Positions 36-51,476 of a DNA stretch of 64,000 nucleotides are shown piece after piece. The notes under the pieces were generated by a model that saw only the letters and a program-made list of their open reading frames with translations, did not search any database and was not told the origin of the DNA. The translations under genes were made by a program, and so were the position numbers. This DNA comes from Oopsacas minuta (lineage: Eukaryota > Animalia > Porifera), in contig JAKMXF010000210.1 of assembly GCA_024704765.1 (NCBI GenBank), forward strand, positions 558,001-622,000, read 5' to 3'. Each line of letters starts with the position of its first letter. The first letter of the stretch is position 1.

Positions 36-3000
36 GTACGAGATCCTTCTACCCTCTATACCTACAATCTGTCACCACTCAGTGATGCTGTATACAGTCT
101 TGTGTCAAACTCTTATACATACAGACTGTCTATATGTTCAGCTCTCGGAGACTCTGTTAGCAGTGAGTGTACTGCAGCAGGAGCTTGTCAGACCAAGGGC
201 ACTACTTCTCACTCATTAGGAGGACCTAACTCAACTCTAACCTTTGCTAATGGGAGTCTTCAAATGAGTTATGAGGGGGGAGACACATGCAGTGGAGGTG
301 TAAAGAGGATGACACTTGTATCATTTACATGTGACCTCAATACCACTGGGATTAAAGAGGCAGGTTGTGTATAGCTAACGTATCCATGGTGTTTATACGG
401 TCTTTACAGGTAGAAGACCCAGAGGTTTCACATTGTTCTTATTTCTTCATTTTCTATACTGACAAAGCCTGCCCTTTCGAATACTTATTTGTTGACTGTT
501 CTTACACAGATACAAGCGGACACACATTTGACTTATCACCTCTCATCAGACAGTTTGATAACTGGAATGGCACAGTCACTAGTGGTATAACATCTGCTTT
601 TTCGAGTGCTAAGTTCTATTTGAATGTATGTCGACCTGTAACTAATATCCCAGGCTGTCATCCCTTGAGTTCTGCTTGTATGAGCATACAAGTTGGAGAA
701 GATATGAAATGGGTGAGTACTGGATATGATAAGAAATCAACTTCTTATATATTGTATTATATGATTTTCTTAGGCCAGCATTGGTAAGCCTAAGACAGGC
801 TTGAAGCCACTAGCGGGTAATGTTCATAACGGACTGAGAATTCTATACACAGAAGATGAGCCTCTAGATCTTGCTGGGGTGTGTGACGTTACCAAACCAC
901 AGACTGGAATTACGTTTTTGTGTCCGAAGAGCAGTGAAACTTCTAAACTTGATTATCCACGGTTGATTGGGGTGGATATCAGTGGATGTATATTCGAATT
1001 TGAGTGGTACACAAAGCTAGCCTGTACTGAAACAGGAACACCTGTGTCTACTCCATGTGCTTTCCAGGACCCTGTTAGTGGATTTGTATTCTCTTTATTG
1101 TCTCTAGAAGGTACAACACCAGTGAAATATGATGGTGAGTTATTTTATACAATAAAACATCATAGAAATGCCGTGAGCACTTGAATACTTGAAGCAAAGT
1201 TTCGCGAAGTTTCGTACCTGAAAGGATATGCGCAAGGGTGCTTATTCAGTCAGAAAATTAGCCACGTATGCTCGTGAATTACTTAATTAACTTTTGCTGT
1301 AAAATTGCGCAAAAAAAATGCCCACGACAGGGATCGAACCTATGACATTCGGCTTATTAGACCGACGCTCTAACCAACTGAGCTACGTAGACAAATATTA
1401 TATTTTAATTCTAATTCAAAACTTTGTTAGTTGTCTTTCCAGTTCATCTAGACAAAAAGACTGCCCCCGACAGGGCTCGAACCTGTGACCTTGGGCTTAT
1501 TAGACCCACGCTCTAACCGACTGAGCTACGAGGGCAGATAATATTCCTTTCCAATTCACCAATTTTTATATCATGTTACAATTACACCCTTTCTATAGAG
1601 AATACAAACGCTGACTCTCCTTTCTTCTACCTATCTATATGCTCTACTATTGACTCAGATCTCCTTCAATCTTCTATAAACCCAAAGTCTGGGGCTGTTC
1701 TTCTTTACCCAAATACTGTATCTGATGCTAAGAACTCGAGTTTAGGAGAAGCTAACTCAAACCTGTTGTACAGTGATAGTGAGCTAATACAGCTCAGATA
1801 CATTGAAGGAAGTGCATGTTCAAGTGGCAAGGTTATGTATTAATGTTCACTTCCTTCATGAATACAATTGTTATTATTCTTATCGTTTTTCAGAAATCAA
1901 CTCTAATCACCTTTGTGTGTTCACATCTTATAGCCTCGAGTGTGTCTTACATTAGCTCTCTGCCATCAGATGACACCTGTCTATTTGAGTTTGAATACAA
2001 GACAATCCTTGCTTGTCCTCCCATCACAACAGAATGTGTCATAACTTCTAATGATGGACAATTGTATGATCTTACCAGACTGAAGCAACTCTCTGGGACC
2101 GGGTTCCCTGTCTATATTTCTGGCCAGTATAGCGATATACCTCAATTATCTTCTCTACGAATTTCGGTGAGCAATGTTTAGCATACTACCGTTAGATATT
2201 CTACAATAGTTACGAGTGTATGCATTAGATATGTCAACCATTGGAAGCTGGTAGTACCGAAACATGTACTAATGGATCTGCATCTTGTCTGAGCTATGAC
2301 AATCATATATTCGATCTGGGACATGTAACAGGAGACCTACAGCTGAGTCAGCAGGGAGAACTCCAGCTGATATACTCAGGAGGTACAGGTTGTAGTAAGA
2401 GCGCGCTTACAGTGATAACTTTTCGGTGTGATCGTAGTGTTGGAGTTGGACAGCCTCTTCTTAGTCTACATAGGAACACGAGTGGGTCTTGTTACTATGA
2501 TATTGTTTGGGACTCTGAGTATGCTTGTGCAGTATTACCCAGTGAGGAATCTAACTGTGCTGTGACAGATACAGATTCAGGTATTATACAAATATTATAG
2601 AATGTTGTGAGGTGATGATCTAAATACTTTTTCGGATTCTATATACATACTCTGAACTTATAAATATTTTCCATTAACCTGTCAAGGTAATTGAGTTATT
2701 CATTACTACTATACTGGCTTGAAACCTGTTATCTTTAGATATGTTATTACAAGATTTTACAACATCCTCTTATCTTACATATTCTTCTAGGATTTGTATA
2801 TAACTTTACAAGTTTGAGTAAATTACCAGATATACACATACAACCTGACTCTACAGTTACCTCAGATGATTACAGCTTCACTATCTCTATTTGTCGTCCT
2901 ATAACATCATCATGTGGAGATGGTAGTGCTCATGCAGGAGCTTGTCAATATTCTGATAACACCCAGCATGTTACAGGTAAGATAACCTTATTACCATGAC

Positions 3001-6000
3001 AGATATAGAATTATATTTGTGTTATTATGTAGGATTATATAGCTCTACACTTATACTGAGTGATGGAGAAGTTCAGCTGGTATATTCTGGGGGTCAAGCA
3101 TGTCATAGTAACAATGTTAACAGAACAACAATAATACGTTTCTATTGTGACAAGACAGCAACTTCTCCTCGAGCTGTAGTACTACCTGAATTGACACATT
3201 GTCTCTATGAAATTATGCTATATACTAATCTAGCTTGTCCTCCTAGCCAACCTACGTTCAAATGCAATGCTAACAATCCTGATAACGGAAACACTTACGA
3301 TCTGTCTAGCTTACAACACAAAGCTTATTTTGAAGTATACTCTACAGATAGTATTGTGTACTACTTTAGTGTTTGTAACCTTCTACCTTCTCAATATGGT
3401 AATAAGGGTGTACACTGTGTTACTGGTTCTAGCTTCTGTGTGTTACATAAGAACAGCAATAATGTGAGTATTTACTAAGTAGACTGTATCGTTAATAGAA
3501 TGATGGTTACTAGTTTGTATTGTAGATATGGAAAGCTACTAATCTCGGTACAATGACACACTCCCCTTACCTACTACGGGATAATCTTCTCCTACTCTCC
3601 TACTCAACTGAGGATGCGAAATATAACACTACCGTGGGATTAGAGTGTTCTGAAGAGTCACAATCGGTTACAGATCCAATTCTTGTTTATCATAGTGCTG
3701 ACTTTTCTACGAATATATTCTCATGGCTAACGCTAGCAGCTTGTCAGAGCGAGGCATCTGACAGCTGTCAAGTTGTGCAATACAGCACTGGATTTACTAT
3801 AGACTTAGACAGCTTCAAAGCAGTTAGTATTCAGTCTCAATCTAATGACGTAGGAGATAAGTTAGCTATTTCTCTTTGTGGTGCTCTAACAGATCCTAGC
3901 TTAGGAGATTGCTATAGTAATAACAATACTGCAGTGTGTTACTCAAAGGGTAGCGATCACTATCCTATTGCTACCTCTAATACTTCTAAATGGTTCTACG
4001 GAGATGAAATAGTAGTTTCTTATTATAATGGATTTAACTGTTTGGACCAATCTTCTCCATTCAAGAGCTCTGTAGAGCTTACGTTACAATGTGGTGATAG
4101 TGAAAGCCAATCATTCGTAGAGCCTTCTAATGAGTGTGTGTATCAGGTTCTATGGCAGAGTCCTCTGTTATGTCAGTATCAAGTTGAATGCAGTGTTACA
4201 CATAACGGATATGATTACGATCTGAATTGGCTGAAAGCATATGATAGCAATTGGAGAGTTAGTTTGTCTGATAAAAAATTTCTTATTAACGTGTGTCACA
4301 ATCTATTGCCAGAAGAAACACAAACTTGTGACAGTACAGCTGCTATTTGCATGATTAGTGGTAATCATGCAGTTAATTTAGGTCAGGTTACTAATGGGCC
4401 TCAGTATGTTAGTGAAGGAGCCCTTCAGATTGAGTATAAGAATGGAGATGAGTGTGGAGATGGGACATACAGTTCTACTATTCAGTTTAATTGCCAGAAA
4501 GGAGCTGATTTAGAAGATTATATCACTCAATCAGTGAATGTAAGTTTATGCTAACACTATTTATTAAATACGTTTATTATATCTTCTTCTTGTTATAGGG
4601 GTGTCACTATATGTTCATCTGGGATACACACGTGGCTTGTGAAGATGCTGGAGGTACTATTATTGGTAAATGTGAGATAGAAGACACAGTAACAGGAGAT
4701 GTATATGATCTTAAACCTATTTTTGATGTAGGGATAATTAATGTCACTATTGAACCATTATTACAGATTATTGCTTGTCAAACTATAAAAAGGTGTGGAG
4801 GAGCGGTATGTTATGACAATTCTATTAGCTATGGTAAATATACTGATTCTAGTCTCAAGTTAGTGAATCATGTCCCTACACTTGAGTACAAGGATGGTAG
4901 TCCTTGTGGTAACAGCAAGTACAAGTCTAACATAGAATTTATTTGTAACAAGAGTGCAATAGATCACAAGTATGTAGAGCATTTGCCAATAGACGGTTGT
5001 ATACACTATTTTTTATGGCATACTCCATTAGCTTGTGCTTCTACTGTCACTGAGTGTAAACTGACAGTTGACAACCGTATAGTTGATATTACAGATTTGA
5101 ATAGGAAATTTGGTGCTTGGGAGGTTGACGTGAAAGGTGATAAGTTATACTTTAATCCTTGCGCTGGTATGAGTTCTTTCTTGATTAACACAAATCTGAA
5201 GAGTGAATCTTGTTCCTCTGACTCTCTTGCTTGTCTTCTATCGAAAGAAACTTTGCAAGAAGTAGGAGCTCTGGACACAGCTGTTCTTAAACTCAGTATA
5301 GATGGAAAATATCCTATAGAAACAGCTCGTAGCCAAACTAAATGTATTCTTGATAAATCTAAAACAAAGTCAATTCAAATACTCTTCTATCCAGGCTCTG
5401 CTATGATAGAAACTCCTGTATTCCAGGGTCTCCATCGTACAACTAGCTCATGTGTGATTAGTATTGTATTCAGTACTTCTCTAGTCGGAGAATCTTCTCC
5501 TATCAATGAACATAATGAACTTATAACCACAGAGACACCAGGAACATGTCATAATGTACTTGTGAAGCTGAATAAAAATAAGGATTATCACATAAGTAGT
5601 GATTTGAATGGAGAAACTCTTGATTTCTACGTAAATTTCTGTTCACATACAAGTGTGGAAGGTTGCAAAGAAGGTACAGTGTGTCTCATAAGGACTCAAG
5701 GTAGTAAAAAATCCGATCCAATTGCTCTCAGTTCTTATAAAAAACAGAGAATAAATGCTGTTAATAATTCTTATATAGAATTAATCATTAGTTCTGTTAA
5801 CAAGTCATGTCCATTTACAAATAAACACATCCTTACAGTATTCTATATATCTTGTTCTTCCCACTATACCGCAGTGAGTATTGAATTCGAATTCACTTCT
5901 CCTACAGGCTGTCTCTATGTATTCAATGTGTTAGCGCCTTCATCAGTTTGTCTTTCATACGAACCTACTGATGCGCCTCCTGGAGAATCTATAAATAGCG

Positions 6001-37569: not shown

Positions 37570-38481
37570 ATGGCCTCCAACAGTATTGAAGTCAATTTAC
37601 AATCTCAACTTGATGAAATTGAAGTTATTGAATCAATGTTTAGTGGAGAAGGTGAAGCGATTATAATCACAAATACAACTCCCTTCACTGAGGCTAAACA
37701 TTATCTAAATGGACATATCCAACATTTTGATTCTATTCTATCGTTCACAGTGAAACTTTGTGTAACATTACTACATCCACCTGATGAAATTAGGACTGGG
37801 ATTAAATTGCATTGTAGCTTTCCTAGAGGTTATCCTATCTCTGCTAGTCCCAGAGTACGAGTTATCTGCGATGGAATCTCCAATAGTTCCCATATTAATT
37901 TTGATAATAAGCTATCTGAACACATTAATAGTATACCTGTGGGTGAACAATGTTCTGTATTAGATGTAATAGAATGGATACAAGAAAATATAAATAAATA
38001 TATTCAAATTAATTCTCAACCTTCAAAACCCACGAATTCAATGACTAATTCAACCAACAATGACAGTTTGACATTATCCCGTATTTGGATATATTCTCAC
38101 CACATATACAGTATTATTAAACGAAAGAATATTCTGAACTGGGCGGAAGAGCTTAAGCTGACCGGATTCTCTCTTCCTGGAAAACCTGGCATTATTCATG
38201 CTGAAGGAAATACTAGCTGTGTGGATGAGTTTTATTCAAGGTTGAAAGCTCTCAATTGGAAACGTTTATCTTGCAAACTGAAAGAAGACCTTGGAATAGT
38301 TACTTCTAGTGTTGAGAAGAAATTTTCAGATTTTCAAGAGATCAGCTTTGATCCTCACGGGAGTAGGGATTATCATATGGATCTTGGTAAGTTCTTTCAG
38401 TTTCTTAAGGACCACGGATTAGAAGATAAATTCCAAATACTCTTCGGAGTCAAAGGCACAGCTTCCAAAGTATATTCGTAA
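37570..38481 (+). CDS. RWDD2: RWD domain-containing protein 2 (A/B)
   Basis: RWD domain (QLDEIEVIESMF, FPRGYP) and C-terminal RIWIYSHHIY..KRKNI, GFSLPGKPG, YHMDLGKF. Confidence 0.88.
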   Translation: MASNSIEVNLQSQLDEIEVIESMFSGEGEAIIITNTTPFTEAKHYLNGHIQHFDSILSFTVKLCVTLLHPPDEIRTGIKLHCSFPRGYPISASPRVRVICDGISNSSHINFDNKLSEHINSIPVGEQCSVLDVIEWIQENINKYIQINSQPSKPTNSMTNSTNNDSLTLSRIWIYSHHIYSIIKRKNILNWAEELKLTGFSLPGKPGIIHAEGNTSCVDEFYSRLKALNWKRLSCKLKEDLGIVTSSVEKKFSDFQEISFDPHGSRDYHMDLGKFFQFLKDHGLEDKFQILFGVKGTASKVYS

Positions 38482-39232
38482 TATATTTTATCTTACACTA
38501 ATAATCTCTCTATTGTGTACGAAGTATTACAATATTGTCAGGTATTAGAAATAACTTATACTACATCCTCTTGCGTAACAGATTGCTTTATCTGTTAATT
38601 TTCATTTGCAACTTTGTTGCTAAGTTTATGAAGGATCATTAGCATTTGATTCTAATTTTATAGACTTTACAACACACAATTAATCTATAATTTTGTATTT
38701 CATTTCTCCGAATTGTATCCTTATTTAATTCATATTGATTGTTCGTTTTGTGCCTAGAATTTGCGTGAGGTTATGTAGCTGAAAAGTATTTAAGTATTTC
38801 AATAGCCTCACTGGAATCATGTCCCAGATCTTCTTGCCTAATGTCGACACTATATGGAAGTATACAGAGCTTTTTGATAAATGAAATTGTATTTTCACAT
38901 ATAGTGAAATATTATCCATTATTCTTGGTTTTAAGCTAATAGTCTGTTGCAAACAGTTTGAACTTTTAAGAAGGCATTTCTATCAATTCTTGGACTATTT
39001 AGAGCCTTCTTACTTTGTATTCTATTAATGCTTATCTTTAACTGAATTAAAACTTAAAGAACACATAATTACTTAGACTAGTTGTAATTGCAAAGTAGAC
39101 TTTTACACTAGTCTGAGATATCTGAGCACTTTGAATACATTTTGGTTACATAAGTAGATTCATGTGTCAGTTATATTATAACTTACCAAACTAGCATATC
39201 ATATATTCTTTGTGATACAATTGTGAGTTAGA

Positions 39233-41065
39233 ATGGCCAGCAAAAAAACAGACTTCTCTAGTTATGTTGCAATGACACATGAAGCTCTAGTGTCCGAGAT
39301 TCCAAAACTCGACCGCATGAGTCAAGCGGAGAGACTCAAACACAATCGTAGACGTAGGGAGAAGCAGATCAAGAAATGGAAGGAGGTGGAAGAGAGGGAG
39401 TTCAAAAAGCATTTGGGGCGTGGCGCAGGAAAGAAAGGTTCCGCAACTCAGCTGATAAAGAACACTGACTCGACTAAGAAACAACAAGTAGACTTTATTA
39501 GTCAGTCAAAACTATTTGACTTTGTTTCAAAAAGGACGATAAGAGATATGAAAGCATTCTTAGACAAATCTAGCGAAGAGGATCAGGTCTCTCTAATCGG
39601 TTCAATAAATCATCACGGCATGACTGCTCTACACAAGTGTGTTGCAGAAGGTGCTACTAAAATCGCAGAGGAGCTGATCTCACGAGGTGCTGACGTCAAC
39701 ATCGGGGACAAGGACCAATGGACACCACTACACGCAGCAGCATTCATCGGAGACCTAGACATGGTGGATTTATTCGTGGCTAGCAATGCTAACCTCATGA
39801 AATTGAACCTTGATCTTCAGACCTGTCTAGATCTAACGGAAGCTAAAGATGTGAAGGAATTTCTAAAAGAGCAATTCGCCAGAGAGAATATAACAGAGGA
39901 AATGTTGAAAGAACTCAAAGATGCTCCCTCAGCTGCCATGCTATCTGAGGCTGATAGTCTGTCTGTGGAAGAACTGAACAAGGGAAAGTATGATAACGGA
40001 GCTACTCTCCTGCATATAGCAGCTTCTAACGGATTTAATGAGGTAGTAGATACACTACTAAAGAAGGGAATAGATCTGGAGGTGAAGGACGAAGATGGAT
40101 GGACTGCTCTACATGCAGCTGTCTACTGGGGACAGGAGAGTACCATAGCCAAGTTATTGTTAGGAGAAGCTTCATTCAATGCTGAGACTAATGCTGGTGA
40201 AGATGTACTAGCTCTTGCGCCTAATAACAACCTCAAGGAGAGGATTGAGTCTATGTTCACTGACTACAGTAAGGAGAAAGCTAAGCAGTTCTTCGAATCT
40301 ATCGACTCGTTAGGGCCTCGCGCACGGGACGCGAGAAGCAGTAGCATAATGGCTAAACAGATGATGAAATCCCCTGAAAAACGCACTGAGGATCAGGTAA
40401 CAAATGCAATGATCATGGGTACCAATCTGGGACTGATTGATGAGGATGATGACACGTTCAATCTCTACTTCAATTCGAGTGTTGATATTTCTGATCCTTA
40501 CCTCCGTACGGTGTATGGAGATAACTACGATGAGCCAAAGAGGATGTCTCTATCTAGTGACTCTATGACTAGTTCTGTATACTCACTCAAACAATCTTCT
40601 AGAGAATGTATTTTTGCGTCTAAGACCCCGTCAACTCCATTAGATGATGATGAAGTAGGGTTTGGAGTAGCAGTAGCAGGTACATTAGGATCTATATTGG
40701 AGCGTGCTACTGAAAAGACAGCTTCTTCTAACCTTAATTCTACTATTACGACACAAGATGCTACCATAAAGGATTTAGTTCCAGAACCTGAGGATCTTAC
40801 TCCGACTGATGACCCTGAAAAGGAACCTACAGCTGCAGAAAAGTTTGCTACTCAGCACACTTCCGATGAATTAACTACAAAAACACAGTCTCTGGATATT
40901 CCGCGGGAACAGACTGAACAACAGAGAAGTATGAGTGACATTCCGGTGCCGAAACGCGGCAAGGCCCAGACTTCCTTGGTGCCGAGATCAAAGGAGGGAG
41001 CGAGAAATAAACAGACAAAAAGAGGACTTAAGAGCAAAAGTAAGGTTGAATGTACTATTTTCTAA
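39233..41065 (+). CDS. PPP1R16: Ankyrin-repeat PP1 regulatory subunit, PPP1R16 (MYPT3/TIMAP)-like
   Basis: N-terminal ERLKHNRRRREKQIKKW, ankyrin repeats (GMTALH, WTPLHAAA, GATLLHIAASNG, GWTALHAA), and C-terminal CaaX-like CTIF. Confidence 0.75.
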   Translation: MASKKTDFSSYVAMTHEALVSEIPKLDRMSQAERLKHNRRRREKQIKKWKEVEEREFKKHLGRGAGKKGSATQLIKNTDSTKKQQVDFISQSKLFDFVSKRTIRDMKAFLDKSSEEDQVSLIGSINHHGMTALHKCVAEGATKIAEELISRGADVNIGDKDQWTPLHAAAFIGDLDMVDLFVASNANLMKLNLDLQTCLDLTEAKDVKEFLKEQFARENITEEMLKELKDAPSAAMLSEADSLSVEELNKGKYDNGATLLHIAASNGFNEVVDTLLKKGIDLEVKDEDGWTALHAAVYWGQESTIAKLLLGEASFNAETNAGEDVLALAPNNNLKERIESMFTDYSKEKAKQFFESIDSLGPRARDARSSSIMAKQMMKSPEKRTEDQVTNAMIMGTNLGLIDEDDDTFNLYFNSSVDISDPYLRTVYGDNYDEPKRMSLSSDSMTSSVYSLKQSSRECIFASKTPSTPLDDDEVGFGVAVAGTLGSILERATEKTASSNLNSTITTQDATIKDLVPEPEDLTPTDDPEKEPTAAEKFATQHTSDELTTKTQSLDIPREQTEQQRSMSDIPVPKRGKAQTSLVPRSKEGARNKQTKRGLKSKSKVECTIF

Positions 41066-41332
41066 ATATAGTACTTTTTATTCATAAAGAATTTTAGCAG
41101 ATACTTTTTCACATTTGTAAATTTGTTCCCTCTGCTACCAGGACATTGCTATTCTATATTATTTCCTCTTTGTTCTGCTGTATATATATAATAGGTGTGT
41201 TAAGATATGTATATATTTGAGTTATAGATTACAATCAGTAGACATAATTATTTTCTACTCGGAAAGGTGGCACAAACCTTGCCTTGGCCTTGGGAGAGGT
41301 ACGTATCCAACACTAGGAACATTTTGTTACTA

Positions 41333-41489
41333 CAGTGTATCCTGGTTATAAGGACCTCCTTGGGAGTTGCAATACATGTCCTTATAACCGGCATAAAGTA
41401 TACAGGAATATATGAAAACCGTTTCCAGAGGATGGTACTTGAATCCGGCGTGTTCTTATATTCTGTTTTATTATAACCGGCGTCCACTG
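41333..41489. mobile_element. 157-bp Tc1/mariner-pogo-type MITE
   Basis: TA|CAGTG...CACTG|TA. Imperfect TIRs CAGTGTATCCTGGTTATAA and (reverse complement) CAGTGGACGCCGGTTATAA, plus an internal inverted copy GTCCTTATAACCGG at 41378-41391. Confidence 0.75.
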
Positions 41490-41972
41490 TAATGTACAAA
41501 ATATTAATTTGTCATTAAACGTGGTAAGAGTGTGTGTACTATATTTTAAACTAAAAAAATAACAAAACATTGGGCCTCGAAACCGTCTCAACATTATAGA
41601 TCGCGGTGATCTCAGATTGTTGTTGACAAAATTCAACCAAACATAGAGAAGTTAGAAAGCACGCATCAGCGACATATATCCCAATGATTTCTGAATTCAT
41701 TCTTGTTGAATCTTGTTACAAATGCATTTTGTCGTAGCTACAGAAATACGGAATGTTATCTGTTCATTATTCAGGTACTATTCTTCTTGAATTCCAGAAA
41801 TTGGAGATATTATTTGATTATATTTAGTAGATTATAAAGTTGCTTTTCGAAGATAACATTTATCCATCTCTGTCTAGATCTACTCAAATACACGTATTTA
41901 ATATTTTAGAGTCGCGTAGTAGTTAGTTACTTGACGAAGAAAATAGTTGTGTTTCAATAATGAATATATCTT

Positions 41973-42041
41973 GGGCTGGGGGCCGTGAAACACATGATTC
42001 ACTCAAAAGGGGACGATCAACAAAAGGTTTGAGAAACACTG
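41973..42041. mobile_element. Probable solo terminus of a hAT (Charlie-like) element
   Basis: Ends ...AAAAGGTTTGAGAAACACTG (reverse complement CAGTGTTTCTCAAACC), typical of Charlie-type TIRs. GC-rich against the flanks; no partner end found. Confidence 0.5.
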
Positions 42042-42715
42042 TATTATTGTATACTTAATACAGAACTGGTGAATATTACGCCAACGACTAATAACTGAGA
42101 AACTGAACATAATTCCTGTCTAAACATATAATTCTGATAATATCTATTCTAATTAACATATTGCAAGTGATGGAATCTATCATCAAGCAAGGTGTCAGAA
42201 GTACCATCGACTATCCATAGTTTAATTTTCCACCTTTCTAAGTGAGGTAAATGATCCCGTCATCATTTAATTACTATATACTTGTATAAACTGCGATATG
42301 GATATAATACAATTCACATTTCATTTCTATTGGAACCACCGTTTAACGACTGCTTTCATTATACACTTCCAAGGTGAGAAATTATTATCATCTCTGTATG
42401 TTATTTTTATGTAATGTTATATCATAATATCTTTATCTTCATGTGACACCCTTTACCAGAATTATCACATCTCCCTTCTTTCCAAAATATATCGATGTAA
42501 TTAAATTCACCCCTAATTAATTATTCCTAACCATTTAATATAATTACTGCTCAGCTCAGTCTCCCTTAGAGTGGTTTCGCTGCATATTTTAACATGTAGC
42601 AGTTGTTATGCAACACCTGATGTATAACTTTCACAGAATACATAAATTGCCGAACTCTCTCTAATTAATTTTTTGTATTAAGTCGCGCTGGGATTATAAT
42701 TTTCAATTTTTTTTA

Positions 42716-42777
42716 TGCATAAAGTTGTGTTTCATGGGATTATTATCTCAAAATCCCATGAAACACAACTTAATGCA
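42716..42777. repeat. 62-nt near-perfect inverted repeat (26-bp stem, 1 mismatch, 10-nt loop)
   Basis: TGCATAAAGTTGTGTTTCATGGGATT / ATTATCTCAA / AATCCCATGAAACACAACTTAATGCA. Confidence 0.9.
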
Positions 42778-45032
42778 GGACTGGGTTATTGAATTTGTGG
42801 TCATTTATAAAAGGAAATTTTTGGTAATATACTAGCTCGTTCATAAGTTGGAGAATTATAGATTAGATTGGAATTTACTTGTAGCGAATAACAATCAAAT
42901 ATACGTAATTATGGTTTAATTGGTGTTAACTAATTAGAGTGACAGTCCCAATTTCCAAGTTCAAAGACTAGATTTGACTAACGTTAACATCATTCTTCCT
43001 GTCATAAACCAATTATAAATTAATTTGATTGATATATTCGCACTATTCACCAAATATGTATGTTGCTCAATGCTATCCTCTATAATATTATTAAGTAATT
43101 AAAAATTAATTATTCATTGCTGTAACAAGTCATCCCCCCTAATTAAATACGAATATATTTTGAGGCTGTAATACCAATTTGTAATAAGACAGTTGTATTA
43201 GTTAATTACAATGGAGCCTCTAACCTCTATTATCATCATTATTTACTTTTCCAATCTGCTACGTGTTAGGTACCGCTAGTCCTGCCCGCGGTTACTGAAA
43301 TTTCATTTATAAAATTATTTTACTAATTGTGCCTTCATCAAACGGTACATCTGTTGGGAAGTCAGTACCCATCACTTTTGTTATCATAGCTCTACCCGAG
43401 ACCAATATAATTCAGCTTTTAGTTGAGCAATTAATCAACAATTAATTAACTCAGTGTCTCGGGTCAATTCACTACATTATGCAGCTTATTTCAATACTCC
43501 ATCACATTCCTAGCTGGATTTATTCTTAATTAATTAATTGAGCTACTCTACGAAATTGTAATTGTAATGTTAGTCAATTAATAGATTAGTGTGGAATCGT
43601 ATCTCTCCTAGTTGTGTCTGTGTGATTAACCCGGCAATTGCCTTATTTGCTTGGATTATACTCTAAATTAATTAATTACTATTCGAGAACAATTAATCAG
43701 CCTGTACCAGGTTGAGTAATTCGTTACAATATCAGATATTCTTGTTGCTAGATCCATAATTATATTTACCATATGGAGACAACCATCTGTGTTTAACGAT
43801 TATGAGGCGATTTGTTATACGAGAAAATATTCCTTCATTTTAGAATCTGAAAACTAGACAACGATATATACACTTTAATGAATTAATGTACATCTATATA
43901 TTATTTATGGTCATTTCTTATCTAATTAGAAGTAAGGTTTCCCTTATTTGAGATATAGTTATGCAGCATAATTGTTTACATATACTTATGAATATTTATA
44001 CGACCAGTGTTTATATTGCCCCTTGGCCTAGTGGAGCTGAGAGATGAGTTAACGGTTGGATTATTCCACCTATTGCTGATCCAATAGTTGCTAATGATTC
44101 TATCTGCCACTTATCTAAATTATGTTCCAACGGCTTAATTAATGACATTAATGTGGCAGTTCTGACTGCCTAATTGCCAGTAGTTTCGTTTTCGTATTTA
44201 TTGTATTGTTATAGTCTCTTTAATTTCTCGATAGTTCAGTATCTACATGATGATTCCTCAAATTTATACATTATGCTCTCTTTTACTTCATATCTTCTTT
44301 CTATTATTAAATTGGCTGCATTTTACAAAATATTTAATTAAATTCCCGCTCTTTGACAGTTTCATTTCAAACATTTTCGCAAGTTTGTTACCAGCTGTTA
44401 TATTCGTTGTTTGCATAGGTCACGTATCCTCGACAAACTAATCCTACTAGGTTTATCCCGACGAGTATTTACAGGATTTTGAATTCATTCGATTTCGGTA
44501 AAAATTAACATCAATACTTAGTTATAATTGATAATAACAATCATACGTATTAGCTCTTTACCATCTAGTAAAGTTACTACTAATCCTTACAAAATACTTC
44601 TGTTCCATTTACTTACCGATTTACAAATATTGCATACAATCACAACAAGATATGAATTGTTATCACTTATCAATACCAGCCGTATAATTATGTAATTATT
44701 TAGATAATTACTTTGTATGAAGCGTTGCCTTTTATTATACTCTGAGGTAAAAATTTATTACCTTTAATTATCTTTAAGAATATGCATTATTTCATACACA
44801 GACGCCATCTGGTATAAATCTATTTGTCTGCACTACCATAAGTACTGATATGATATATTTTATCGCGATTAATAAGTTAAAAAATCTTTTTAATTAATTG
44901 GTGCCATTTATATTATTTGAAGATTTTAATCTTTGATAAATTTTCCATAGAAATTTCGCGTATGTTAAAATTCGATTTTTGCATTGTATCAAGCCATTAG
45001 CCCTCGTTATTATTGACAAGCTCAGTTCCAAG

Positions 45033-45040
45033 TATAAATA
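45033..45040 (+). promoter_or_regulatory. TATA box of the homeobox gene
   Basis: TATAAATA about 135 bp upstream of the inferred ATG at 45174. Confidence 0.5.
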
Positions 45041-45173
45041 CTCTTACTTGAGCAATTAATTAGTACTTAAGCATTTCATAACTGGCCCGTCAATCATTGA
45101 TATGCATAAAAATTCGACTCGCTAATTATCCTACTGCGCTGTTTAGGCAAATCATATATCTATTGATTGATTG

Positions 45174-48100
45174 ATGATACTCGATACAGTCACGTCTTCG
45201 AATATCTACACACCTGACTCTACGCACCAATACACTACTCGAATTCTACCCGATAAAGAGGAGCGTACATCGATGATAGCTCTCATAAACTTTCTTCAGA
45301 TTCACCATTTGGATGTAAGTGCAAATTACGATATTTATATTCAGTAATTCGTTTCCGTATTTAGCTAGAATATTTGATTTGTACATTGCTCCACCGATGT
45401 TTGTTACTTGATTTACTTGTCTTTTCGGGTTTTAAATTGAAAAAATATATTTTATGCTGTAAGTATATTTCCCAAATGTTACGCATAGTTAATTACGCTA
45501 CTTGCATGAATAAAACTTATAATAAATATTTAATTACTGAATTGGAGTTGTTAACTAAATAATTGTTCATCTTTTCTATATATTAGAAAATAATTATATA
45601 ATCTCTTTTATTGTACTGGCTTTTGTTTGTGCATTTAACCTTATAGTTTATCAGCCCACTGGAACATTATTCATTCCTTCTCTGTAATAATTATATGACA
45701 GTCGATTATTCGGTCTTTTTCCTTCCCCGCGAATTATATACATGAAAATTGTCTCTGTCACTGAGACGGTTAATATACGCTAAGAATATGCCTTACTTAA
45801 GATCTCATTATAAGACTGTATTACATTTGTGAATCAATTTGTACAAGACTATATTTACATAGTTTGTTTAGTAATACAAGTGGATAGTTACCGCCCTTGT
45901 ATTAATGATAGGAAATTGTTATCTATCTTTTTAGGAAACTCAAGCAGCCTTGCTTCAAGAACTCTGTCTTACTGAGAATTCTGAGGTTACATTGGATGAA
46001 TTGCAACAGGCAATTAATAAGTAAGTTAATTTATCCACCTTGCATGACTAATCATTGTTTGTTCTAACAAGTGTATTTTCTCTCTCTTCCACCGTCTATT
46101 GCTTTTGTTTTTATGCATTTTGATGAGGAATCCCACTTCAACATGTGCTCATAGATGCATATATTCATTGGAAGCATGTACATTATATAATTGCCTACTT
46201 GACTTAACCTGGTTAATGACCTCAAAATTCTTTGATACATGTCTAATGCGTTCGTAAATATTCTAATTTTTTGTTGTTGGAATTTATTCTTATTAAAATA
46301 TTTACATTTGTAGCTGACGTATAAATTATTTTAATAAGTTTACCTATTATTTGCTGCACTTGGCTAATTGTACGCACTTATTTCTATTAATTTTTGGTTA
46401 TTCTAAAACTTATGGCTTTACAATTTGTACAGTGGGTGGCTAATTACATTTACACTGATTTCTGAATCCGAAAAATTCTATGTTAGCTAGAAATTCCTGA
46501 ATAAAAACTGACCATATGCCAAACTACTTATCAAATTTAATTATGAGTCGCGATTTAATACGAATCCGTTCGTCTGAATCATCTTGTGAATAATTCCCAT
46601 TTCTCTACATCTCTGGCTATGTTTATACTATTGTATTATGTGTAGGAGGGATAACAAATTGATGGGTGGGAGTAGAGCTCAATATCATGGACACTTATCC
46701 CCTCTACCAATGGATACTGAAGAGGATTACAGAAAGATCCAAACAGCTCTACCTTCTTCAGTTCTATTGACTAATGATAAGTCACATCCTCCAATCTATA
46801 ATGAGATATCTGTGGGTACAGCTATACAACATAGTTCTCCTCCTAGCTTTATTCCTGCTACCTCCCCCATGATTATCCCTAAAGTAGAAGCTGCTTCTTC
46901 CCCAAATGATCCAATTTCTATTCTTGTGCATACGCCCATTTCATCATCTCCTGGCACCTCATCAAGCTCTGCTTCTTACCAAGTTCCGATCATCTTAAAC
47001 AACTTTTCAGGTTCTGATCAGCCTAATAACGTTCTCACGCTTTTACAACCACCTCAGAATGTAGCTACAACGAATCCTACTCAGCAGCAGACTCAGATTC
47101 TATTGGATGTAGGTTCTAACTCTCTGTCTCAGCTACAGCATATTGGTGCTAAGAGTTTGAATGGAGTTATTCCTATACAACTTAATCTGTCTACTAGAGA
47201 ACAACAGCAGCAACAACAGCAACAACAGCAACAACAGCAACAGCAGCAGCAGCAGCAGCAGCAGCAACAGCAACAACAACAACAACAGCATAAACTAGTA
47301 AACACAAGTATACCTATAACTCAACCTCAATCTCAACCGATTATCATAAATTCTCTCGGTAATGACATAAACACTGCAGTTGGTTACGTTTCTACCAAAA
47401 TCGTATCTCCAGCCACACATTCTTCAAACCTTATTCAAAATAATCCATCTTTAGCTTTCCATGTTCAGCACCCTACCAACACACAAGCTATTACAAAACC
47501 TCTTTTGATCCAAAAGGAAGTTTCACAAACAAACAAAGATAACAACAGACGTCCAATCCTAAGTTATTCTCAGGTACCTCCCACTATATCACAAGCTCCT
47601 AAGACCGTATTAACTTCTAATGGTATTTGTCAGGTAGAGAATCTGCAAATAGCTGGTAACGCTGCCTGGGTGAAGGATACTCCTGGAGATATCCATGCTA
47701 TTCCTATTATAAATACTACAATCAGTCCTCACTTCAGTTTCGATCCTGCTTTTGAGTTAGGACAGCGTAGAAGGAAGAAGAGAGCTGTTTTCGCTCCTCA
47801 GGTCAGAAGGACGTTAGAAAATTCATTCGAACAAAACACTCGGCCATCTCGTCGCGAGTTGGAGTTTCTAGCAGGAAAACTTGGGCTCCTATTCGAGGAG
47901 GTACGTGTTTGGTTCTGCAACAAGCGGCAGAAAGAGAGACAGCAAATGCAGCAGCTAGTCAATGATCAGCCGCAAGGAGATACATGTGGAGATTCTTATA
48001 ATGTATATGCTGATGGATCTCCTCCAATTCCTGGAACCCTACAATCTGATGACTCCCTCCATGAACAAGATTTTCATGTGAAGGAGGAATTCGATTCGGA

Positions 48101-48236
48101 CAATAATATATCACTACCCCCTGGTGTATCAGATTCAAGCCAATTAGCACCAACAGAACTTTTATCAGAATCAAGAGATTCTGAATTCAAACACTCATTT
48201 GAACCTCGCTTCACCTCAGTAGAACAAAGCTCATAA
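45174..48236 (+). CDS. Homeodomain protein (POU-type HD, Cys50) with N-terminal LisH-like motif and polyQ; 3 exons, about 605 aa
   Basis: Exons 45174-45314, 45935-46020 and 46646-48236. GT-AG junctions (GAT|gtaagt, tttttag|GAA, AA|gtaagt, tgtag|G) keep frame. HD at about 47769-47948 contains VRVWFCNKRQKE. Confidence 0.78.
47202..47288 (+). repeat. (CAA/CAG)29 polyglutamine tract
   Basis: 87 nt of mixed CAA/CAG codons including a pure CAG run. Confidence 0.97.
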
Positions 48237-48656
48237 TACTAATGATATTTTTATCTTTTTGATTTGATTGTTATCCAGTCAATTCTCTAAGTAAGCTGCT
48301 CGAGTCATATATATTTTATATGCTATTACAATATTTCAATATTGCTTGATAATTTGTGTCCCGTCTGGCTAATATGCTCTTTGTGAACTTGTTTAGATAG
48401 TTTAACTCATAGATTACCATTTGCATTAATGCTGAATGGTTACAAACGCAAAGACTTCTCAGAATGACAATTTATGTAAATATGTCCACAATTTATAATA
48501 AAGCAATACACGTAGTTAGAAATATTTGTAGACAAGTTGACATTTATAACTGATAATATTACATAAAGCGAATACTTAAATAATCTCCCAGCTAATTTTT
48601 ATCTATTGTTTAGCTGTATAATTTATGACCGAATTAGTTGAAATATTGGAAGATAC

Positions 48657-51476
48657 ATGGCTCGATTAAGTATTAATAAGAAAACGAGTTCTATATTTTA
48701 TATGGATGGACAGGGACAGGACCTGCCTTCTCCATTCGATATACCAGGAAATAGTTGCAATATCAGAGAAGCTCTAACTTCTCCAGTCTCTCCAACTAAT
48801 TCTTCTCCATCTCCTTGCGTAGAACAGAGTTGGGAGATTTTACACAGGAATCGTAATAGATCACTAGATATTGACATGATACCGAATTTCAATAACATGT
48901 CACTGATGGAAATAGAGTCTGGTAGATCAGAAATTTCTATTGCAGCTAAACGTATGTCTTCTGTTGTTACCAACAGGGTTGAGAAGCCTCTGTGTGGGCA
49001 CTTACTCAAGATGGGGAATAACGGGTGGATAAAGATTCGAAAAGATCGATGGTTCAAATATATCCCTGAAACGGGTAGACTTAGTTATTTCAGAAGTTCA
49101 ACTGACTATATACCTCTAGGCTCCATACCAATATCAGAAGCTACTTTCACTTATAATGTTGATCAAATTGAAAAGTGTCAGTTTCAAATCAACACTGCGA
49201 ATAGGACTTATGACTTGCAAGCTAAGAGTGAGCAGGAAATGATGGGATGGCTTAGAGAACTTCAGGGAAAGCGGAAAGAATTTATATCACTGGAGAACAA
49301 CATGCTAACTGAATCGGTTAAATCTACGATGGAAGATCTAGAGTCTCAGAAAAAAGAACTGAGTTTGATTGAGGCTGACAAAGGATTTAAACGAAACCGT
49401 GGTCATTCCCACTCTTCTCACGACTTCTCACACACTCAAACATATCATGATAACTTCTCAGGATTATCAAGTATGCTCAAACCTCATGTGACAAAATCTT
49501 CTACGATATTTAGAAATAATAGCAACAATTTTCCTAATTCAGGTTCTAAAAAGGATGGATCATCTCCATGGCCATGCGACAAGTGTCAAGATTACCAAAA
49601 GCAAATAAATGGGCTCAAGGGTCAGAATGACCTCTTGACCCAACAGCTGGAGGACAAGTGCCAAGTTATAAAAACATTACAGAGTGCAATGAGGAGTCTA
49701 GACATACAATATAGATCTATTTCTGCGGCTATTGAATCATCTCCTAATGCTAAGAAGAAACTATCAAATGTATCTGAAATAGGTACACAAGATTTTTCCT
49801 CAATTCTACAGGATTTGAATGAAGAAATTGAAATATTGAAGGAAGAGAAATCTGCATGCGAGAAGGAGAATCAAGACTTACAAGACCAACTACAAACTTT
49901 GGAAGAAATAATGCAGGCTAAGGAAAATGTTATACTCTCTCTTACTAAAGAGATATACTCTCTAGAACACACAGATAAGCCACCACCTGTAGACGCAGTG
50001 CTACTCAACCACGAGCCTACTCTTCAAGAACGTCTCTATGAATCTAAACAACAAATAAATGCATACAAAACAAATACTGAGTTTATGAAGAAAGAAGTTG
50101 ATGACATACTATCTTTACACAAACAAAAAGAAGAGAACCTCAATCTCTTAAGAGACCAGTTCTCTAACCTTGAGGCAGAACATGATAAGCTTAAAGGCAA
50201 ATATCTTATTTTGTTAAAAGAACTGAACAAACCAACTGCTTGCAACTTTCTAGACTCAGAACTGTTGAATAATATGCTGAAAGAAGCATTAAATGAAACT
50301 CGTACAAGAGCATCTACTATCTCGATCACTGACCATCTAAACTTCCAAGAATATGATCCTTATGGTTTCGCTTATTTTGACTTGGAGATGAGTGCTGAAC
50401 AGAAAGAAGTGCTTATTAAAGCTTACTTGAAAACTCTTCATGATAATAAAGTGGAGGAGTCCCAGCACAATGAAAAATGGAACGCATACGTACACAGGAC
50501 TGGACGTAGAGAGAACTTCCCACAAACCAAAGAACTAAAGGATTTAATTCGATTTGGAATTCCACAGACATTCCGTAAAGAAGTATGGAAGAGTATGATT
50601 AAGAAACATATAGCCAAAACTCATATAGACTTAGATGAGAGCTATTATAAGAACTTGCTAGAGCTCTCTCAAGGACAGACTGCTGCTATTAAACAGGTAC
50701 AATTGGATCTGTTACGTACTCTACCTAATAACAAACACTTCAGGAGAGAGGATTCAGACGGAATCAAGAAGCTGAATAGAGTTCTGCTAGCTTTCTCATA
50801 CCATAATCCACGTATTGGATATTGCCAGGGGATAAATAGAATAGCTGCCATATTGTTACTACTGTTAGATGAGTTTGATGCGTTTTTAGGGATGGTAGCA
50901 ATTATTGACGTCATAATGCCTCAGGATTATTACACTGACAAATTACTGGACTCACAAGCTGATCAGAGAGTATTCAATGATTTCTTGTCAGAGAAAATAC
51001 CCCGTCTCGCTTCTTACTTGCAGAAAGAGAGCTTGGATATTTCTCTAATTACATTCAATTGGTTCTTTACAGTATTTGTTGATGGATTTCCTCCTGATTT
51101 AATGTTCAGGATATGGGACTGCTTCCTGTCAGAAGGTTGTAAGATCTTGTTTCGATACTCACTAGCCTTCTTCAAAATGCACGAAGAGAAACTATTGCTA
51201 TTCCCTGCTAGCGCCTATTTCAAACTAGTGAAGGAGCTAAGTGAGTCCACATTCGACTCTAGAAGGCTGTGTCACATAGCATTCTACGAGCTGAACCCGC
51301 TAGCTACCAGAGATGTAAATAGAAAGAGACAAATGCACCAGGCTGACGTAAAGCAGGAGATAAAGGAAATGGACGCTAGACGTGAGAGTGCTCTACGTGC
51401 TTATAAAGAGAGAGAAACTACTGTTGTAAGGATGTCTGAGCTGGAGAATAATGAGGAAGTTTATAACAGTGACTAA
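48657..51476 (+). CDS. TBC1D2: TBC1 domain family member 2-like (PH, coiled coil, Rab-GAP TBC)
   Basis: PH domain (LCGHLLK...RWFKY...LSYFR), coiled coil, and TBC motifs IKQVQLDLLRTLP and IGYCQGINRIAAILL. Confidence 0.88.
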   Translation: MARLSINKKTSSIFYMDGQGQDLPSPFDIPGNSCNIREALTSPVSPTNSSPSPCVEQSWEILHRNRNRSLDIDMIPNFNNMSLMEIESGRSEISIAAKRMSSVVTNRVEKPLCGHLLKMGNNGWIKIRKDRWFKYIPETGRLSYFRSSTDYIPLGSIPISEATFTYNVDQIEKCQFQINTANRTYDLQAKSEQEMMGWLRELQGKRKEFISLENNMLTESVKSTMEDLESQKKELSLIEADKGFKRNRGHSHSSHDFSHTQTYHDNFSGLSSMLKPHVTKSSTIFRNNSNNFPNSGSKKDGSSPWPCDKCQDYQKQINGLKGQNDLLTQQLEDKCQVIKTLQSAMRSLDIQYRSISAAIESSPNAKKKLSNVSEIGTQDFSSILQDLNEEIEILKEEKSACEKENQDLQDQLQTLEEIMQAKENVILSLTKEIYSLEHTDKPPPVDAVLLNHEPTLQERLYESKQQINAYKTNTEFMKKEVDDILSLHKQKEENLNLLRDQFSNLEAEHDKLKGKYLILLKELNKPTACNFLDSELLNNMLKEALNETRTRASTISITDHLNFQEYDPYGFAYFDLEMSAEQKEVLIKAYLKTLHDNKVEESQHNEKWNAYVHRTGRRENFPQTKELKDLIRFGIPQTFRKEVWKSMIKKHIAKTHIDLDESYYKNLLELSQGQTAAIKQVQLDLLRTLPNNKHFRREDSDGIKKLNRVLLAFSYHNPRIGYCQGINRIAAILLLLLDEFDAFLGMVAIIDVIMPQDYYTDKLLDSQADQRVFNDFLSEKIPRLASYLQKESLDISLITFNWFFTVFVDGFPPDLMFRIWDCFLSEGCKILFRYSLAFFKMHEEKLLLFPASAYFKLVKELSESTFDSRRLCHIAFYELNPLATRDVNRKRQMHQADVKQEIKEMDARRESALRAYKERETTVVRMSELENNEEVYNSD

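Follow-up and report, generated by a model that had tools for sequence, protein, structure and literature searches.

The defining feature of POU factors is a pair of tethered DNA-binding halves, a POU-specific domain (POUs) and a POU-type homeodomain. Another kind of regulator relevant to this work carries a LisH: in SSBP/LUFS, TBL1, LEUNIG and Flo8, an N-terminal two-helix motif is followed by Q- or P-rich regions, and to our knowledge none of these proteins has a homeodomain. POU-class homeodomains that stand without the POU-specific half have been described before. The highly divergent homeobox protein HDX belongs to the POU class, lacks a POU-specific domain and carries an atypical homeodomain of 68 amino acids (aa) (PMC2211742). 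In Mnemiopsis leidyi, only one of the three POU26 homeodomains is preceded by a POUs, which is missing upstream of those of MlPOU26b and MlPOU26c (PMC2959044). Here we describe a gene found in a 64,000-nt stretch of DNA from the sponge Oopsacas minuta (contig JAKMXF010000210.1, positions 558,001-622,000, forward strand; hereafter the window, an AT-rich, eukaryotic DNA with closely packed genes). Its product combines a conserved N-terminal helical module encoded by two mini-exons, a glutamine-rich region with a polyglutamine (polyQ) run, and a POU-type homeodomain preceded by what appears to be a decayed POUs. We consider, with a probability of roughly 0.8, that the gene encodes a POU-class homeodomain transcription factor which is restricted to its lineage and strongly conserved, and that it descends from a bipartite POU gene in which the POUs has decayed.

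The gene was compared with the closest of the described systems. An earlier note on this DNA, made from the sequence alone, had announced a new architecture lacking the POU-specific domain. The layout itself holds: the N-terminal module on two mini-exons is followed by the Q-rich/polyQ region and then by a POU-type homeodomain that lacks a working POUs. The architecture is not categorically new, in view of the precedents of HDX (PMC2211742) and MlPOU26b/c (PMC2959044) and of the putative remnant of POUs described below; its new part is a POU gene with a vestigial POUs to which an N-terminal module has been added. In contrast to HDX, the sponge homeodomain is a typical one of 60 aa, with 57 residues on Pfam positions 1-57 and no insertion. 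The gene resembles MlPOU26b/c in having a POU-class homeodomain without an upstream POU-specific domain in a non-bilaterian; these proteins, likened here by their description, belong to a different phylum, and neither an N-terminal module nor a polyQ has been described in them. In the Oopsacas homeobox inventory, which contains three POU entries, LOD99_2513 ('Pou1/OmPOU1') is listed as 'HD + POU' (PMC10280926, supplement 3, Table S14, Fig. S10). The best BLAST hit of this protein is a 59-aa match of 72.8 bits covering 9% of its length, and its domains were checked with InterProScan besides Pfam (PMC10280926). A coverage of 9% fits a protein of about 600-690 aa in which only the homeodomain is recognisable; LOD99_2513 is probably the window gene, and the gene is probably already part of the published inventory. 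Decay of the POUs, mini-exons and a LisH are not discussed in that paper, and the present analysis would correct the annotation to a homeodomain protein with a POUs remnant instead of 'HD + POU'.

Judged by its sequence, the homeodomain is clearly of the POU class. Pfam Homeodomain (PF00046) matched aa 379-435 of the 532-aa open reading frame (ORF) that encodes it, with an E-value of 1e-14, and no other family rose above noise in the ORF. All 75 non-orthologous database matches carried Pou together with Homeodomain, and the best matches in PDB corresponded to POU2F3, Oct-1, Oct-2 and Pit-1 (E 5e-14 to 5e-11), against 2.5e-9 for DUX4, the best non-POU protein. Pfam, the database relatives and the PDB matches thus agree with the class assigned in the earlier note on the basis of V47, WFCN with Cys50, and RQKE. 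The homeodomain was 62-67% identical to that of a large group of POU proteins whose signature is 'AVF-PQ ... LLPEEVRVWFCNKRQK'. Both sequences with sponge names belong to this group, namely Halisarca 'Pou6' and a Halichondria cluster (the cluster names yielded this single usable label). A quick tree built on 60 columns placed the orthologues of the window gene beside this sponge-containing group, with the bona fide POU6 clade nearby and supports of 80-85. Canonical POU factors (the sponge-named group, the Halichondria 'POU2F3-like' cluster and POU6-type proteins) share with the sponge gene V47, W48, F49, C50, N51, the RQKE tail and the order of linker and homeodomain, and it is to their POUs helices 2-3 that the sponge remnant aligns. 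On the other hand, the sponge gene differs from them in the lack of a Pfam Pou match, in a helix 4 that is shortened or deleted, in the additional N-terminal module on two mini-exons and in a long polyQ.

Members of the gene family occur only in a few related genomes. A profile search among 1.84 billion proteins returned four representatives at E<=1e-30, and beyond these only generic matches to POU homeodomains. The comparison set consisted of six related loci (L001-L006) from five orthologous species, with L001 and L002 carrying an identical protein. The homeodomain hardly varies between the window gene and its five orthologues, and AlphaFold modelled it with a predicted local distance difference test score (pLDDT) >90.

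The state of the POU-specific half was then compared by family models, fold prediction and profile searches. The earlier note had seen, upstream of the homeodomain, no POU-specific domain, and this stands as far as a working domain is concerned: Pfam Pou (PF00157) gave no match at E<=1 in the ORF, and AlphaFold2, run on the alignment of the six ORF sequences, folded only aa 383-446, everything before having pLDDT <50 and no helices. A further exon that might supply an intact POU-specific domain was searched for by tblastn with 75 POU proteins, and none was found in the window or in any of the loci, introns and upstream sequences included. What does not appear to stand is the complete absence of the domain, since a weak putative remnant was detected at the correct position (ORF aa 304-346). 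The BLASTP alignment with P0049 and the phmmer alignment with Pit-1 continued through the Pou domains of these proteins, pairing 'RRPILSYSQ' with 'KRIQLGYTQ' and 'SNGICQVENLQIA' with 'QSTISRFEQMQLS'. In a reciprocal test, a profile of the 90 residues preceding the homeodomain in the six orthologues was run against 168 POU proteins from which the homeodomains had been cut off. This profile scored at least 3 bits on 29 of the 168 proteins, compared with none for a reversed and one for a shuffled control, and the best E-values ranged from 5.6e-4 to 8e-3 (Z=168). The matches followed a single register (profile positions ~19-60), lay 29-46 residues before the homeodomain and fell inside the Pfam Pou domains, covering model positions ~22-59; the best target was a POU6-type protein (208 bits to POU6F1).

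The segment is best described as a putative decayed remnant of POUs helices 2-3, lying in the canonical position and predicted not to work as a POU-specific domain. Its helix 3 reads SNGICQVE, against SQ(S/T)(A/T)ICRFE in POU proteins, so that the recognition residues are replaced, and helix 4 is shortened. What is left of that helix, the 9-10 residues 'AGNAAWVKD', is missing from P0003 and P0004 (loci L004 and L005). This deletion in two orthologues suggests that the remnant is still eroding within the clade.

The position of the remnant bears on the origin of the gene. Since it lies in the canonical place, the protein would be a degenerated POU factor and not one that never had a POU-specific domain. 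According to the opposite view, which is one of the options discussed for HDX, the homeodomain of this lineage split off before the POUs joined it, and the apparent remnant is a chance resemblance. Such an origin would agree with the failure of the remnant in Pfam and hhalign and with the marginal outcome of the single-sequence tests, but the homeodomain is nested within a set of POU proteins, each with an intact POUs and the two sponge-named sequences among them, and the profile matches POUs helices 2-3 in one register and at the canonical distance, which the controls do not. We regard it as improbable.

The structure of the complete gene was read directly from the sequence and compared with sequencing data. 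Four sequencing runs from one sample were available. Three of them were flat and covered the introns, and therefore were taken as DNA. The fourth, run X4, behaves like RNA: the depth of its contigs in the region 45100-48300 was ~700-3600 on exons and 10-15 on introns, a contrast of about 100-fold. Run X4 may also serve for other genes of the Oopsacas genome.

The gene is a real, expressed four-exon gene, with one 5' untranslated region (UTR) exon and three coding exons. Two short coding exons outside the set of listed ORFs, spliced in frame to the 532-aa ORF, had been proposed in the earlier note, and the sequence, the joints in X4 contigs and conservation all uphold them. Both of the proposed junctions, 45314/45935 and 46020/46646, are present with GT..AG borders in one spliced X4 contig; in a second X4 contig, exon 1 is continued by the first 9 letters of exon 2. 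The ORF spans 46638-48236, its own ATG at 46638 not being the true entry into the frame: the acceptor at 46645/46646 completes a split AAG codon, and the frame is entered at 46647. The resulting protein has about 605 aa (47 + 28 + 1 + 529). Upstream, 25 loose letters of an X4 contig before 45145 matched the window only at 42347-42371, where the sequence reads ...CCAAG/GTGAGA, and the end of exon 0 at 42373 is joined to 45147. Between this junction and the ATG at 45174 there is an in-frame TGA, at 45168; therefore, exon 0 is untranslated with regard to the POU-type protein.

Conservation gives further evidence for the same structure. In tblastn searches, both exon peptides were found upstream of the large ORF, in the same order, in every locus, with an identity of 64-66% for exon 1 (34% in the most distant locus) and of 64-93% between species for exon 2. 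The window and all six loci share the start ATG, the GTAAG of both donors, the YAG of both acceptors and the phase-2 'AA' end of exon 2, as well as the start of exon 3 ('G-AGR-GAY', K-R-D) with its acceptor; in two species the conserved frame extends upstream of the ATG of the ORF as far as the acceptor. Substitutions at codon positions 1/2/3 amounted to 90/48/166 in exon 1 and 87/28/237 in exon 2, showing a third-position bias. No naturally spliced protein was retrieved from the databases with the whole ORF, the N-terminal 184 aa or exon 1 as queries, which returned only genomic ORF calls or nothing.

These data also bear on the possibility that the gene might be a duplicated POU gene in decay and without function. 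The degenerated POUs and the variable length of the glutamine/proline (Q/P) tracts could be read in this way. This is contradicted by the near-invariance of the homeodomain in the window and five orthologues, by frames and splice sites intact in the window and all six loci, by the coding substitution pattern of the mini-exons and by the high exon depth in X4. Because of this conservation and expression, we regard a non-functional duplicate as highly improbable.

It has to be said that several points weigh against the interpretation of the gene as a POU factor with a decayed POUs. A custom POUs hidden Markov model (HMM) made from the 75 relatives found the same spot in five of the six orthologues with p-values of only 0.03-0.08, indicating that the remnant is weak, and 1-3% of shuffles reached both the POUs score and the right position. 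The profile-profile comparison with hhalign was not significant (p 0.1) and gave a different register. The 168 targets of the reciprocal test had been pre-selected by a search whose profile included the pre-homeodomain region; moreover, POU domains do not represent independent observations. Furthermore, the placement within the POU class depends on the quick 60-column tree and its supports of 80-85. As for the transcript, the RNA nature of X4 is not on record (nor is the kind of library), and the sides of the X4 joints are short (20 and 30 letters), so weight was placed on their combination with conservation.

The N-terminal module was studied for its relationship to known families. AlphaFold2, run on the alignment of exon 1, predicted a helix at aa 28-43 with pLDDT ~90, ending four residues before the exon boundary. 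Invariant residues in exon 1 were I38, F40, L41, H44 and L46. The first 12 codons of exon 2, which would correspond to the second helix of the proposed LisH, contain invariant T2, Q3, A4, A5, L7, E9, L10 and L12. Two positions are usually conserved in LisH, namely the Gly that follows its first helix and, in a 'T/S-A' pair, the small residue. An N-terminal dimerisation domain of the HNF1 type was also considered and rejected, with no Pfam HNF-1_N match and a homeodomain without the HNF1 insertion.

In the earlier note, this segment was read as a true LisH whose homodimerisation functionally replaces the POU-specific domain, in a new LisH-polyQ-homeodomain architecture. Several observations are consistent with this proposal: the segment is strongly conserved, the confident helix ends close to the exon boundary, the POUs is non-functional by HMM and predicted fold, and the pattern hydrophobic-x-x-F-L ... 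T-x-A-A-L-L-x-E-L agrees, by eye, with most positions of the LisH consensus. Against it, the segment has His and Gln at the two usually conserved positions, and the exon-wise searches recovered no LisH. Neither exon peptide matched LisH (PF08513) at E<=10 in Pfam in the six species, a weak negative since each search covers half a motif; the sole Pfam signal was a chance match to Ste50p-SAM (E 0.048, in two of the six species). Likewise, profiles of the exons against PDB sequences at E<=10 gave no LisH protein and only chance matches (a chitinase, RAMP1 and a designed binder), these half-motif searches having little power. We consider the proposal as a whole tentative, and the identification of the exon 1/2 module as a LisH doubtful. 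The stronger claim that a genuine LisH lets a POU-type homeodomain without its POUs partner bind paired sites as a homodimer appears unlikely. The resemblance of the protein to the LisH regulators would be one of layout, the sponge segment being only a LisH candidate.

Alternatively, the module may be a lineage-specific helical motif, unrelated to LisH, that serves to dock either a cofactor or some other part of the protein itself. This would be in line with the lack of a family match in Pfam, PDB or the ESM Atlas, where exon 1 returned noise (bacterial FixO clusters, with low recognition), with the restriction of the gene family to a few related genomes, and with the absence of a shared N-terminal module when profiles of exons 1 and 2 were compared with the 75 POU relatives. 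The fairly good by-eye LisH pattern and the little power of half-motif searches speak against it, and we give a docking motif of this kind a little less than an even chance.

According to the interpretation that we favour, a degenerated POU factor, the ancestor of the gene would have been a canonical, bipartite member of the sponge/POU6-related group of POU genes. The POU-specific domain of the gene would have decayed to a remnant of about 40 residues that the family model no longer recognises and for which no fold is predicted, and DNA binding would depend on the intact POU-type homeodomain alone. The Q-rich/polyQ region may act as an activation or condensation region, and the helical module of exons 1-2 may mediate a protein-protein contact, either self-association or docking of a cofactor. 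Such an N-terminal contact could make up for the second DNA-binding half that was lost.

In this glass-sponge lineage, the homeodomain half is under near-absolute constraint, the POU-specific half appears to be decaying, and the N-terminal module and polyQ are retained, which makes the gene well suited to the question of how far POU function depends on the bipartite domain. Were the N-terminal module a dimeriser, the loss of a domain would have been compensated by oligomerisation. If it were a LisH homodimer, an intramolecular bipartite DNA-binding domain would have been replaced by intermolecular dimerisation in an early-branching animal.

Table 1. Features of the POU-type gene, in positions of the window; a slash marks a splice border, and ORF aa are numbered along the 532-aa ORF.
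Feature	Positions	Strand	Remarks
Exon 0 (non-coding 5' exon), 3' end	42347..42373	+	X4 contig letters; donor GT at 42374
Exon 1	45147..45314	+	Acceptor TTTAG/G at 45146/45147; coding sequence from ATG 45174, 47 codons; donor GAT/GTAAGT
LisH-like segment (candidate), first half	45255..45314	+	Exon 1 aa 28-47; predicted alpha helix aa 28-43
Exon 2	45935..46020	+	TTTAG/GAA...AATAA/GTAAGT; 28 codons + 2 bases, phase 2
Exon 3, coding part through stop codon	46646..48236	+	Acceptor TGTAG/G; joint 46020>46646
PolyQ run, 29 glutamines	47202..47288	+	ORF aa 189-217, inside Q/P-rich region of variable length
Putative vestigial POU-specific domain	47547..47675	+	ORF aa 304-346, invariant core NGICQ-EN; BLASTP, phmmer, pre-homeodomain profile
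POU-type homeodomain	47769..47948	+	ORF aa 378-437; V47, W48, F49, C50, N51, Q54

The length of the Q/P tract varies between species, and the contigs of all four runs break at the polyQ run. Within ORF aa 114-181 (window 46980-47180), four short blocks, YQVPIILNN, NN-TLLQ, ILLDVGSNS and LNGVIPIQLN, are invariant in the window and the five orthologues. None of the four matched a family, and AlphaFold gave low-confidence strands in this region.

Some minor observations concern the 5' part of the gene. Between species, the 300 bases before the start ATG (44874-45173) have an identity of 70-73%, compared with 58-63% in intron 1 (window versus L001 and L003-L005), which suggests, at the level of sequence, a conserved 5' UTR, acceptor or regulatory sequence. 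The 5' UTR exon contains an ATG at 42298; if the transcript starts far enough upstream, splicing to 45147 (42298-42373 + 45147-45166) would generate a possible upstream ORF of 32 codons, ending with the TGA at 45164-45166, just before the main ATG. At position 45178, about half of the X4 depth reads C for T, changing codon 2 from ATA (Ile) to ACA (Thr), a difference that none of the three DNA-like runs shows and for which an allele, an artefact of the contig or a change in the RNA may account.

The five orthologues are syntenic, with the common gene order RWD - Ank - POU-type gene - PH/TBC - CAP-Gly - Urm1. In the window (37570-51476) and in L001-L006, the longer order RWD/Prp3_C - ankyrin - POU-type gene - PH+TBC RabGAP - CAP-Gly - Urm1 - sulfate transporter is kept in every related genome fetched, and the PH+TBC RabGAP neighbour is encoded in the window by a single ORF of 939 aa at 48657-51476.

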